64,000 bases of DNA from NCBI GenBank assembly GCA_904063045.1, contig CAJFCJ010000026.1, forward strand, positions 1-64,000. The letters are read 5' to 3'. The notes beneath the pieces are model-generated. The model was not told the origin of the DNA. It saw only the letters and a list, made by a program, of their open reading frames with translations, and searched no databases. Both the position numbers and the translations under genes were made by a program. Numbering within the stretch: the stretch's first letter is position 1; each line of letters begins with the position of its first letter. Of this stretch, positions 55,469 to 63,227 are shown piece after piece. This DNA is from Dimorphilus gyrociliatus (Eukaryota > Animalia > Annelida).

Positions 55469-56133
55469 TGAAGCGTTTTAAATACTGTCCTCCATTTTTT
55501 TTCTCTCTTTTTAAATTTTCGTCTGATATACAGTATTTTACTGATATATTCTTTATAGACGTTATTTATTATTTCACAAATGGTTTATTAATATTTTTTT
55601 TTTTTACGATTTGTACAAATGCACCAATGAACTTTATATTACTATGCGAATTTTAGGGCCTAAAATAATTTAAAGTTAAATACCTTGAAAAGGTCACATA
55701 CAATTAATGTTTTATTCTTTATTAATTCTTTTTTTTTATGTTTTATGTTGAAAAGTCTTAAGATTTGTTATTATTATTATTTTCGTATTATTTTAGACCC
55801 TAATTACAACTTTTTTGTCACTCTTATTTCCAATCGTAAAAAATACTTGAATAGCGTCTACTTTTTACTTCTTTTTATTTGAAAAAAAAGCAAACAACAT
55901 CAAAGTGTATTTATTCGTATAGAATACACAGAAAAACTTTTTTTTTAGTTCAATGTTTATCCATTTTGTTTGACGGCGGTGGTACACTTCGACAAAGATG
56001 ATTATTAGCTAATTAAGTCATCAGTGATCTTTGTTATAGTTTTGCGGAAACAATTTCCCACCTTTCCTCCTCTCTCTCTCTCATATAACTGCTATTCGTT
56101 GTAAATATTAATTAATTTTTCATTGTTATTCAG

Positions 56134-57853
56134 GATCGCTTCAACTATCATTGCAATTGAAAACGAACATAGACAAGGAGGAACAGCATTTTTTGGATTT
56201 GAAAAGTTCTAATTTATCATTAATCGAAATTATATGCGAAGCACAAATATCCGACGAAGATAAAAAGTCATTAAAGAATTTTGTGATAGCTAAAAAAGTA
56301 AGTCATGTACGCTATTAAAGATAAATATAGTAATTATTCTAAATTGCTTTGTTTAATTAGTGCCTTCCAGCTGGTAAGGATGGTAAATGCATTTTAGATA
56401 AAACAGAGGATATTTCTGCCGGCGAAGTGTTTGTCGCTATGCAAGGCAACACTTATAATACGCCGGCGAGATATTCGCTTATAGGCGATGAGGACAACAC
56501 GGACAATACTTTACGAGAGGTTTTGGTTATCGATAGTGAGTTAAAAAATATATCTTGTACGAGCATCTCTTGTATCGTTTTTAATTACAGAGCCTCAACC
56601 AGAAGATGGAGGCACATACCAATGTAAAATACCTCGTGTAGTGAATCCTTTAACTGCTAGTGCAACTATACCAATCTATTGTATGTTATCCCACATGTTT
56701 TTTACTTGTCTTCATTTAATTTGATTATTAATTAGACCCTAAAGAAACATTTTCAATGAAAGTAAGACCCGGAACTAGCTCTGACAAGATGTATCTTTAT
56801 GAATCATACAATGAAGAAGAGAGTCTAATTGCAGACGAAAATGATAAATTTATAATTGATTGCTCAATAACTAAAACATTTCCGCTTCATGAGATCGATG
56901 TTCTTATTGACGATAAACCAATGTCTGAGGCACAAATGGGAAAAACAAAATATAAAACATTTCGCACATTGAAAGACGGCGTTCACGTGGGTTTCTTTTA
57001 TTTTTTTTTACAATAGAAATTCTTTAGCACCCTTTTACTAAAAATATTAAATATTTTCATTTTTAGGTGTCGCTTTATAGTAGCAGTAGAGAGGTGACAA
57101 TACCTTTTAAATACGAATATGATGGAAAGTCAATAAAGTGCGCAGCCTACGTAAAAGGGGCTAGAGAACAAAGCTTAATAACAGTGGGTGTTAAAGTTGG
57201 AATTCAAAGCTGTACGTATACTATATAAAAACTAAATATTTTAGATTTTTTCTGTTATTATTATTTATTATTCTAGATAAACCGAAATTCATCTGCGACT
57301 CTGTCCAATATGCCGAAAGTAACACTAAAAATTGGAAACTAAAATGTCAAGTGATCTCAAAGCCTTCAATTAGAGAAGAAACAGCCAAATTTGCTTATAC
57401 TTACGATATAACAAGGGGAAAAGCGAATTTTAGTCTGGGACGAATCGATAACTTTGCTGGTCATTATATAGCAGAACTAAAGCAGGTTAGAGAATTTGTC
57501 AGTCAACTATTCAATTATTTACTATAATACTTATTTAATTTAAATAGATTGAGAATAATTTATATGAAATGATATTAAGAATAACGCGAGTAACGAGGAG
57601 AGCCTATACTGATTATTATTTTGAAATTGCTAATCAGAGAGGAAAAACAGTTAAACATATTGTACTTAAGAAAACGAAAGTTTCTAAAAGAGGTAGTTAA
57701 TTTTCCACCTAATAATCTACTTTTTTTATCCTTTAAGTAATTAGTTTTTTTTTTTCTTTTGCAGTTCTAATGAATGACAATGGGTCTACAAGATCAAATT
57801 ACAGTTTTAAGTGTATCCTATTTCTAGTCACTATGCTGTTTGCTATGCAGTAG
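56134..57853 (+). CDS. Putative GPI-anchored protein with about three Ig-like domains (copy 2); first exon not located
   Basis: IEIICEA...LVIDKPQPEDGGTYQC, FIIDCSI...IKCAA, WKLKCQVISKP...DYYFEIANQRG and hydrophobic end CILFLVTMLFAMQ* (TAG 57851-57853). Confidence 0.7.
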
Positions 57854-59029: not shown

Positions 59030-60128
59030 GTGATGGATAAAGCCAATGCTGAAATGTCTCGAAGTGAAACTTTAACGAGTTGGGGATTATTTCTTCTCTT
59101 TATTCTTTTATTATCGTATGTAACGATAGGAGCGTATAGTTTCTCAGTTTTGGAATACGATAGGGAGTACAACGGTTTAGAAGATTCGAGAAATTTTACA
59201 TCGACTTGGCTAAGTAAGATTAATAATCCACGTTTAATTTTTTCGGTGAATACATGAAAGAAATTTTCTAGGTAACCATCAATCATGTGTGGAACCTGAA
59301 GACTTGAGCAAATTAGTGAAAAGGATTATACAGGATTACAGAACGGGAGTTTTAGCCTCGCCTGCAGCAAATAAAACGGTTGATGCTGGTTTCAACTGGG
59401 AATTTAGATCGGCAATACTCTTTGCCGAAACCGTAATAACGACAATTGGTTATGGACATTTATTTCCCTCAACAACAGCTGGTCGTGTGTTTTGTATCTT
59501 TTATGCAGCGTTTGGTATACCGTTAACTGGAATATTTTTAAGCGAGTTGGGCAAACGGATGGCATGCATATCCATAAATTGTTACGTTCTCATTGCCACC
59601 AAGGTATTTAAAACCAGACCGTTTGATCCATCCCAATCTACTGCTCATCTGTCTGCAATACTTGTTATACTTTTTCCTTTTAGTATCCTTACTTTCATTA
59701 TTATAAGTGCCGCCGCTATATACGTCTCGGAAGGTTGGACTTATTTCGAGGCATTGTATTTTTGTGTTATAACTATGACAACTATTGGTTTTGGAGATCT
59801 TGTACCTCATAAGAGGTACAGATATATAGCTACGGCGTGGATTTTTTGTGGTTTGGCATGCTTTTCAACTTGTATTAATCTATCGTTAAGATACGCAAGT
59901 TTAATTTCATCCTCAACAAGTTTGTGGATAAAAATCAAAACTACTCTGAAGCTAACAAAAATTGATAAAAGCAAACCTCTATACCACGATAAGTCTATGC
60001 AAACTGATGATTTAGGCTATTTAAGCTCAAAGGTTAATCTTGCTTTGAGAGTTGAGCATCGTGATCTTGCCTCGGCTTCAGATATAATAAATGATAAACA
60101 AAAGGCTATCAACACCATTGCAAGCTAA
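59030..60128 (+). CDS. Two-pore domain potassium channel (K2P/KCNK family), 2 exons
   Basis: TM1 in exon 1. A phase-1 intron ends at 59271. Pore motifs TTIGYG and TTIGFG, plus FCIFYAAFGIPL and W-x-YFEALYFCVIT. Subfamily not assignable by eye. Confidence 0.92.
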
Positions 60129-61557
60129 AAAGAAACCAGAAATATAAACACATTTTTACTCTTTACAATTCTTTGTCCATCCAAAAGAAAACTTACTTGT
60201 AAAAGTACCAAACTAACGGAAATAACAACTATATAGATTCCATATTCGACAAGCCATCTTTTAAGAGCTAAATAGCATCCCTGTTATTCAAATATTTAGA
60301 TTCAGGAAAATAAAAAAAAAAACAAAAAATAACAAACCTTATGGTGAAGAAATTCTCTTTTAAATGATATACAAAATTCTAGCCATCTTTCTCGTTTCTT
60401 ATACTTTATATCATGATTACAGCATTGTATAGGAATAGATAGAATCGTCTAAAAAAAAATAATAGAATATATTAAATAGAATATTTTTATGAAAGTGAAT
60501 TTTCTTAAATATTTTTTCTATTTTTACATTTTGTACGTAAAAATTTCTACAAACTTTTAAGGAAAAATATACTATATACTATTAGCTATTTATTCCTTAC
60601 CTCGTTATATCTATTATTGTATTCGTATTTAGATGTAAACCAATCATGATAATTATCTGCCCCACAACAGCGTAACTATTGTTAATAGTAACAAAAAAAG
60701 AAAAAAAAAATATGAATAGACAATCAATAAATCTTTTTTTTTTCATTAAAATTTTATTTTAAATATGTTCATACTCCTAGTTGCATATCATTCCATGCAT
60801 TTTCCAATCTGGTTCCTCGATTCATATATTCGTGTTGGACAAAATTTCTCATATTTTCATGCATATTCCAATCAATCTTTACAAGGAAAAGGAAATTACA
60901 TTTTGAAAATTATTTACATATTTTAAATTAGTATACATATGCACTGATAATGTAATAGAAACAAATATATTTTCAATACTGCGTATACCTGGTTGATATT
61001 AACGCTTGCTGCTATAAGACCAATAATTTGTAGAAGAACTAGTAAACATATCATGAATGCATACTGAAACGAAAGGATATTTCATTAGCTACGTCAACAA
61101 TAATAAATACGAGTTATTTACTTACAGCCTTTATCACAGTTCTCTTTTGAAATAGAACACCACAACATCCCAATAATGAAATCAAAAGTGTAAATCCGCC
61201 AAGAGCAATTATAAAGATTATTATTAATTTTCCAGTATTAGGTAATTCTGCTGAATTAACAAAAACAGTTCCATTTGCATTTTTTACCGGTTCAAAAAGT
61301 GCTAATTTCGTAATTTCTAAGTAGCTTGTAGTTGTATCATCCGTCAGCATCCACGTGCCAAAACCCATACAAAATAGGCTTACAAACGAAAAGAACGTAT
61401 TGAATACGAAAAGTAACCATTTTGTACAGGATTCTTTACAGGTTAACGTAACCGGTTTCTCAGGAATCTCAAAAAACGGAGCCACTGAAAGCATTTCTTT
61501 GGGGGAAAGATATTCTTCTTCTTTTTCAACTGTGTTATCTTCGTTCCACTCGGACAT
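60017..61557 (-). CDS. Tetraspanin, 7 exons
   Basis: CTKWLLFVFNTFF TM1, SLLGCCG TM2, TM3 exon, large loop with CCG and IQCC...C...GC, and TM4 VVISVSLVLLQ|LAMVLIAFCL. Last exon 60124-60017. Confidence 0.88.
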
Positions 61558-61849
61558 TTTTCAATAATAGTAATAAGGGAGCTCTTCAAACTATTGTTAG
61601 ATTCGAAATGTTCAGTAATGTTTCTTTTTTATCTTGTTGCTTCTGTGTACGCGAGGGTAAATAGCCGGAAAAAAAACAGGAAAGTCTGGAATATATTTGC
61701 AAAAATTTAGGTTCCCAAAGGTTACAAAAGGACACTTTAACCGAAACAAATGCCTTTGCAACTTGTTTTATGAGTAGAATATAATTATTTCGTTAAGAAA
61801 ATCCTAGAGCAAAAAAATAAAAACGAAGACGAACGATAGTAAAAGTCTA

Positions 61850-62202: not shown

Positions 62203-63227
62203 ATGAAAATATTTCTTTCCTTTTCTTTCTGGGCTGTCACTTTGTTTTTGATAGCAGCTGCTAAGGATGAAGATTGGGAGGACATAGACGTCGTAGCTGT
62301 AAATTTAGATGACGACACAAAGGGGGATTCGGAAAATGAAGTCGAGGCTTCGTTGACAACTACTCCATCTAAAGTCAGTCCAGACGCTTGTCCAGTCCTG
62401 AATTGCGATAAAATTTGTCCGTGCGGTAAAAAGACCGATTCAGACCATTGTTACATTTGCGAATGTGAGTGTAATCATGGTGACAAATGTGAGCATGAGT
62501 GTGAATTTGGACGAAAAATTTCTAGTACTGGCGAGTTGACTTGCGAATGTCACTCTGAACAACAATACATAGGAGTTTGTAAAGCGTTTTGCCATAATAT
62601 TCATAATGAAGCTAAAAATTGCGAAATATGTCCTCATTGTAATTGTAACGGTCAAGTTAACAATTGTCCAACTCTAGAATGCAATACAGTGTGTAAATAT
62701 GGGTATACAAGAGATTACAACGATTGCCCATCGTGTAATTGTCAACGTGGACCGGATCATCCAGGTCACGTAGACCCTTGTTACCATACCAGGTGTGATT
62801 ATGGGCAAATTTGCAAAGTTATTGCAGGAAATGCTGTTTGCGTTGGTAAGTAATTCAATTAATTCTAGTTTGAATAGGAATTTATATTCTCTTTCCTCTT
62901 TTTTTTTCTAAATATTTTAGGACATCCAAGTCCGATAACAACACTCCCCCCTCTAAATCCACCACAGTGCCCTAAACTTACTTGCGGACCAGACTGTACT
63001 TGTGAACATTTCATTAGAGACGATGGCTGTACGGTTTGTCAGTGTGCTAACGCATGCTACGTAAGTTTTTCATTTTTTATTGTGATTGAAATATTCTAAA
63101 CTTGAAATTGATATACTCTTTTTAGGGTGTTGCTTGTCCTTATGGCACTATATGCATTCCATACTACGTCTTCGAAGCCTATACGGGAAAACTTCAAGTA
63201 ACACCAAACTGCAGAAAAGTAGAATAG
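62203..63227 (+). CDS. Secreted cysteine-rich antistasin-repeat protein, 3 exons (62203-62845, 62921-63060, 63126-63227)
   Basis: Signal peptide, acidic linker, antistasin-like modules (CPVLNCDKICPCG..D..C..CEC; CPTLECNTVCKYGY.RD..DC..CNC; CPKLTC...DDGC.VCQC) and a follistatin-N-like PC...C..GQ.C......VC module. Confidence 0.75.

Follow-up and report, generated by a model that had tools for sequence, protein, structure and literature searches.

For a coding-coding 3′ overlap, the textbook example is THRA/NR1D1 of mammals, a pair in which one gene's last coding exon faces a coding 3′ exon on the opposite strand. In human, mouse and fly, overlapping protein-coding genes are most often convergent, and this class is also the best conserved; overlaps in which coding sequence is shared are strongly under-represented in each of the five metazoans surveyed (PMC2330155), in agreement with the preliminary description of the present locus, which had called antisense CDS-CDS overlap rare in animals. 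The class is rare yet already known, and we describe here a further case, in which the last coding exon of a tetraspanin gene of Dimorphilus gyrociliatus, a miniature marine annelid, lies antisense within the end of a K2P channel gene. Judged from the genomic and RNA-derived sequences that we compared, this tail-to-tail CDS/CDS overlap is very probably genuine and evolutionarily conserved.

Like the convergent animal pairs (PMC2330155), the two are unrelated genes on opposite strands that share terminal exons, with both frames open and the layout conserved between species. Unlike THRA/NR1D1-type pairs, the worm pair has the stop codon of one gene complementary to the 3′ splice site of the other, one half of a transmembrane helix is coded within the overlap, and the pair is found in the genome of a miniaturised invertebrate with no alternative splicing apparent. 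The worm pair also resembles those antisense overlaps of prokaryotes and viruses that have their third positions in common, in its 1-2, 2-1, 3-3 codon offset, the one with the least mutual constraint, and in having its substitutions at shared wobble sites. It differs from them in that the overlap is a spliced exon rather than a contiguous ORF, and in showing no de novo overprinting, since both proteins come from old families.

The published D. gyrociliatus genome (73.8 Mb) holds 208.86 genes/Mb with a median intron of 66 bp, has short intergenic regions and neither operons nor trans-splicing, and its compaction was termed a 'conservative route' (PMC7854359). The extreme compaction that the overlap had been taken to imply fits these figures. 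Neither the channel/tetraspanin pair nor antisense overlaps are mentioned in the text or supplements of that paper (PMC7854359).

Gene models of the channel and the tetraspanin

The window, that is the whole stretch of 64,000 nt that was analysed, is C26:1-64000 of an assembly of 77.9 Mb in 349 contigs. It was compared with sequences from two relatives, the three species showing about 24% nucleotide divergence. The first, L009, is a 7,036-nt genomic contig of a related species (Logan SRR23372228; the identical sequence occurs in SRR23372216), syntenic with the window from an upstream gene through the channel and the tetraspanin. The second, L011, is a 1,332-nt Logan contig (SRR31837527) of the other relative and encodes P0123, a tetraspanin of 327 aa (58% identical). 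The features of both genes are collected in Table 1.

Table 1 Features of the channel and tetraspanin genes, with positions in the window
Feature	Position	Strand	Remarks
K2P channel exon 1	59033..59213	+	Met to TM1; phase 1 end; donor GT 59214-59215
K2P channel exon 2	59272..60128	+	Cap helix, pore 1 (TIGYG), TM2-TM3, pore 2 (TIGFG), TM4, C-terminal tail, stop
Channel candidate poly(A) hexamers AATATA/TATAAA	60141-60148	+	Inside tetraspanin intron 6
Tetraspanin exon 1	61126..61557	-	144 codons; N-terminus, TM1, small loop, TM2; PF00335 E 1.7e-10
Tetraspanin exon 2	60989..61063	-	25 codons, TM3; splice sites; tblastn P0123 residues 144-169
Tetraspanin exon 3	60775..60876	-	34 codons; donor GA|GTATGA; also in L009
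Tetraspanin exon 4	60601..60675	-	25 codons, CCG motif; PF00335 positions 141-153, E 0.011
Tetraspanin exon 5	60338..60448	-	37 codons; PIQCC and further Cys; splice reading, tblastn
Tetraspanin exon 6	60197..60280	-	28 codons; GC motif, TM4 first half, ends ...VLLQ
Tetraspanin intron 6	60125..60196	-	72 nt; acceptor TTAG 60128-60125
Tetraspanin exon 7	60017..60124	-	35 codons and TAG; TM4 second half, cytoplasmic tail
Tetraspanin candidate poly(A) signal ATTAAA	59900..59905	-	Within channel SLISS codons; putative function

The channel ORF at 59274-60125 matches the public protein DgyrCDS13581 (P0001, 345 aa) with 100% identity over 100% coverage, and splicing exon 1 to exon 2 (...TWLS|NHQSCVEPEDL...) recreates that protein exactly. 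PF07885 (Ion_trans_2) matches it in two stretches (E 1.1e-36, Pfam), and the two pore domains with filters TIGYG and TIGFG and the four TM segments place it among the K2P/TWK channels; its top named homologues are KCNK and TWK proteins. From 59272 the frame of exon 2 is open up to the stop codon TAA at 60126-60128, approximately 80 codons past TM4. The L009 orthologue shows 81% protein identity in a gap-free alignment, with the stop at the equivalent codon.

On the other strand, a seven-exon model predicts a tetraspanin of 328 aa. Its introns of 62, 112, 99, 152, 57 and 72 nt are typical of the D. gyrociliatus genome, and in both the window and L009 all six have GT...AG ends and are in phase 0. 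The exons were searched singly against Pfam, with the orthologue P0123 as stand-in for the full-length protein. P0123 matches PF00335 over profile positions 2-223/225 (E 1.1e-37), and since this match extends up to residue 303, and with its last 11 residues into the part encoded by exon 7, the overlap exon carries an integral half of TM4. In a tblastn search of the window, P0123 placed all seven exons. A word-based protein search with the 188-aa exon-1 ORF of L009 as query returned only the query itself; a HMMER library search with exon 1 returned P0123 and the annotated D. gyrociliatus protein DgyrCDS13582 (P0122), residues 1-144 of which are identical to exon 1.

As had been noticed before, TM4 is incomplete at the donor near 60195: exon 6 ends at 60197, followed by the donor GTAAGT with its GT at 60196-60195. 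The acceptor TTTTTAG ending at 60125, previously proposed to open the last exon, was likewise recovered. It reads tttctggtttctttttAG (...tttctttttAG|CTT), with the AG at 60126-60125, and opens an exon at 60124-60017, of which 60124-60020 reads LAMVLIAFCLSFIISEAEARSRCSTLKARLTFELK* and 60019-60017 is the stop codon TAG. In the tetraspanins of other animals, intron 6 is also positioned within TM4. The CD63-like ancestral tetraspanin gene has six introns in phase 0 and cysteines in the pattern CC-CC-C-C (PMC2650405), and the worm gene shares both, with its last exon following the ancestral intron 6; the large-loop cysteines fall in LRCCG (exon 4), PIQCC and EFC (exon 5) and GC (exon 6). Unlike CD63-like tetraspanins, the worm protein is extended by about 45 aa at its N-terminus, and its cytoplasmic tail is longer. 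Its sequence has diverged strongly, the nearest proteins outside dinophilids showing 27–40% identity (exon 1).

The public model of this gene, DgyrCDS13582 (CAD5125343.1; 60769-61557, - strand), is only 204 aa long. It joins exons 1-3 and reads through the exon-3 donor (GGA|GTA TGA) to a TGA at 60771-60769 in intron 3, ending ...MQLGV*. If this were the protein made in D. gyrociliatus, exons 4-7 would be unused relics, a reading for which the annotated read-through speaks and which we nevertheless regard as highly improbable. Such a product would span only profile positions 2-138/225 of PF00335, lacking the CCG motif, the remainder of the large loop and TM4, whereas exons 4-7 keep open frames, phase-0 splice sites and a divergence biased to third positions, and the RNA of the relative encodes the full form of 327 aa. 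The seven-exon model thus corrects the public one from 204 aa to approximately 328 aa.

The shared 108 nt in three species

With the seven-exon tetraspanin, the two coding sequences overlap over 108 nt (60017-60124), exon 7 lying antisense within the channel tail. The exon had been described as lying wholly within the last 36 codons of the channel. Its location within the tail stands, while the count needs a small correction, as base 60017 falls in the 37th codon from the end and 37 codons are touched. The complementarity of the channel TAA to the TTA of the acceptor, also reported before, was found at 60126-60128: the stop codon is the complement of - strand TTA 60128-60126, part of the acceptor TTAG of intron 6. 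In this register, position 1 of a channel codon lies opposite position 2 of a tetraspanin codon, 2 opposite 1 and 3 opposite 3, so that the wobble positions coincide.

The same pair of genes with the same exon arrangement is present in L009. Its seven tetraspanin exons have equal lengths and phases, save for an internal length difference in exon 1, and its exon 7 likewise has 35 codons and the same end position (LAIVFIAFCLSFIYSEAEARSRCSTLQAKVTFGLK*). The L009 channel ends in TGA opposite a tetraspanin acceptor TCAG, compared with TAA and TTAG in D. gyrociliatus, which indicates that the stop codon and the splice site changed together.

L011 lacks all six introns and is thus RNA-derived. The protein that it encodes reads ...GSSLVIGLISMIFLQ|LAIVFIAFCLSFIFSEAEARSRCSTLQAKVNFGLK (...MIFLQ|LAIVFIAFCL...GLK), with exon 6 joined straight to exon 7. 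Past the tetraspanin stop, the last 163 nt of L011 are the reverse complement of channel TM4 and tail (ACFSTCINLAIRYASLISSKTNLWIKIKTTLKLTK...KQKAMNTIAS), although, as the assembler is strand-agnostic, this 3′ part could hold channel mRNA reads rather than tetraspanin 3′UTR. A layout that is free of indels in two other species, and for which RNA-derived sequence from a relative shows exon 6 joined to exon 7, is beyond chance, and the antisense CDS-CDS overlap proposed earlier is borne out by it.

Two other ways of ending the tetraspanin were considered. Retention of intron 6 would give a protein reading ...LLQVSFLLDGQRIVKSKNVFIFLVSF* that ends at the acceptor TAG, with a CDS overlap of just about 4 nt (60125-60128). 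It was rejected: the read-through peptides of D. gyrociliatus and L009 are unrelated, the intron is poorly conserved, is 1 nt longer in L009 (73 against 72 nt) and carries indels that are not multiples of three, and it is missing from L011. A different final exon, which had been named as an observation that would overturn the overlap, was sought in a six-frame search of the whole 77.9 Mb genome with P0123; the sole match to its residues 286-327 was C26:60020-60145(-), with an E value of 1.1e-8.

Two further features of L011 were noted. At L011:1013-1330 (- strand) a gene caller predicts a 105-aa 'protein', which is the channel tail continuing artificially over the exon 7/6 junction. It is an artefact, since the intron that carries the true channel stop has been spliced out, and illustrates how overlaps generate spurious database proteins. 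At the other end, the 5′ leader or promoter-proximal sequence of the tetraspanin (ccagactttcctg...tttaccctcgcgtacac; window ~61640-61695, - strand) is conserved at L011:70-125, although the coding exons show just ~55–60% protein identity.

Selection and possible functions of the overlap

Variable sites among the three species were counted by channel codon position. Within the overlap, 4/35 first, 5/35 second and 18/35 third positions vary, which places 18 of the 27 variable sites at shared third positions; between D. gyrociliatus and L009 alone, the corresponding fraction is 15 of 23 differences. For the part of the distal channel tail that borders the overlap (59952-60016), the counts are 9/22, 7/22 and 14/21. 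Coding constraint is thus clear in the overlap, whereas the channel tail alone is only weakly constrained.

The loose constraint on the distal tail would also be expected if the channel coding sequence never reached the overlap, that is if 60017-60128 were removed by an intron missing from the annotation or preceded by an early poly(A) site. We consider this very unlikely. The first in-frame stop is the one at 60126, and any mRNA ending earlier would be of the non-stop type. In both genomic sequences the tail runs without gaps to the same ...NTIAS, with L011 open through NTIAS. No conserved + strand exon lies downstream of the channel, as the tetraspanin introns cannot be aligned between D. 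gyrociliatus and L009. The public model DgyrCDS13581, from an annotation in which AUGUSTUS, Exonerate and PASA results were merged by EvidenceModeler with evidence weights, extends to 60128 (PMC7854359 methods). A channel that ends or is spliced before ~60017, likewise listed in the preliminary description as a refuting observation, is therefore unsupported by the sequences compared.

Returning to a channel that is coding up to 60128, we asked in which frame the selection acts. Per opportunity, changes silent in both frames occurred at a rate of 0.56 (n=9) and changes nonsynonymous in both at 0.14, with intermediate rates for those nonsynonymous in the channel only (0.33, n=3) or in the tetraspanin only (0.31, n=2). 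The pattern of the one-frame rates is as expected under selection on both frames, but the counts of 3 and 2 are too small to establish it; the channel-only changes are not significantly rarer than the doubly silent ones.

The openness of the channel frame was also examined as a sign of selection on the channel tail. For a stop to arise in the channel frame, the facing tetraspanin codon must be one for Tyr, His or Gln, and exon 7 of D. gyrociliatus contains none of these residues. If synonymous codons are drawn at random for the given tetraspanin peptide, the probability of an open channel frame is P = 1.0 in D. gyrociliatus, 0.35 in L009 and 0.73 in L011, and openness was accordingly rejected as such a sign. 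Across the three species, the overlap gave no sign of separate selection on the channel frame, and selection on the tetraspanin alone explains the substitution pattern. The dual coding constraint suggested at first is hence only partly shown: constraint on the shared stretch is there, and tetraspanin selection suffices for it.

We propose that a CD63-like tetraspanin came to have its ancestral last exon inside the last 36-37 codons of the channel, most likely as intergenic space was squeezed during the compaction of the genome in this lineage. The channel would be translated to the first stop that it meets, and that stop would be supplied by the splice acceptor. As third positions face each other, most silent changes are tolerable for both proteins. 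The constraint on the overlap comes mostly from the tetraspanin, and the distal channel tail, the evolution of which is rapid beyond the shared stretch, probably is a passenger that tolerates change. For D. gyrociliatus itself, we infer the same tetraspanin splice as in the relative, an unspliced channel tail and the poly(A) sites.

On the other hand, the overlap could be functionally exploited, either through mutual regulation by transcriptional interference or duplex formation, for which the mature RNAs would be complementary at their 3′ ends over at least ~240 nt, or through selection on both frames, i.e. true dual coding. Three species with about 24% nucleotide divergence retain the arrangement, and in both directions the one-frame nonsynonymous rate is about half the doubly silent one, as far as such tiny counts permit. 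Convergent overlaps are, moreover, the best conserved in other animals, where antisense regulation was proposed (PMC2330155), and duplexes between mRNAs of convergent genes were reported in yeast (PMC6993858). Still, conservation of the arrangement follows simply from the fact that neither gene can move undamaged, and an open channel frame requires no selection; functional exploitation thus seems to us rather unlikely. Its more specific version, a conserved regulatory coupling, appears less likely again. It would involve a duplex of at least ~240 bp or a collision of transcription, reciprocal expression of the two genes, and joint selection that includes the signals embedded in the partner gene, namely the stop codon in the splice acceptor and the poly(A) signal in channel codons.

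The locus is a clean coding-coding antisense overlap of an animal traced in three species, of a class strongly selected against according to surveys (PMC2330155). Under the passive origin that we favour, compaction in this lineage would have reached the point of merged coding ends, where a stop codon and a splice acceptor have bases in common, and the locus offers a small natural test case for the co-evolution of membrane proteins with shared wobble positions.

Transcript ends, annotation and neighbouring genes

The preliminary description further held that each 3′UTR must run antisense through the coding exons of the partner. For the tetraspanin this stands, as its predicted 3′UTR must lie antisense within channel coding sequence. 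An ATTAAA is present exactly 112 nt past the tetraspanin stop in the window, L009 and L011. The channel peptide YASLISS after TM4, the codons of which hold this conserved antisense hexamer, is invariant in the three species, and the site may be a second signal shared by the two genes. For the channel the claim is weakened. Its 3′UTR would first cross the 72-nt intron 6, where its candidate hexamers are located, and an ATTAAA occurs at the matching place in L009, so that candidate signals lie 12–15 nt past the channel stop in both species. The channel 3′UTR may end in or near intron 6, with no need to cross tetraspanin exons.

As DgyrCDS13582 is truncated, the public gene set contains no CDS overlap at this locus, and the overlap is visible only with the corrected model. 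The truncation may stem from a retained-intron transcript or from a combiner that shuns opposite-strand overlaps. Pipelines that shun opposite-strand CDS overlaps may systematically shorten genes in such genomes.

Two neighbours of the pair were also observed. The upstream neighbour (56123-57695, + strand) is syntenic with L009:448-2110, with 64% of nucleotides identical. None of its several short + strand ORFs (56756-57527) matches Pfam, and the neighbour probably represents a gene of multiple exons and unknown family. Head-to-head with the tetraspanin, a single-exon ORF of 216 aa (62203-62853, + strand) has a signal-peptide-like start, is cysteine-rich and matches Antistasin (PF02822, E 4.1e-6, Pfam), and likely encodes a secreted protease-inhibitor-like protein.
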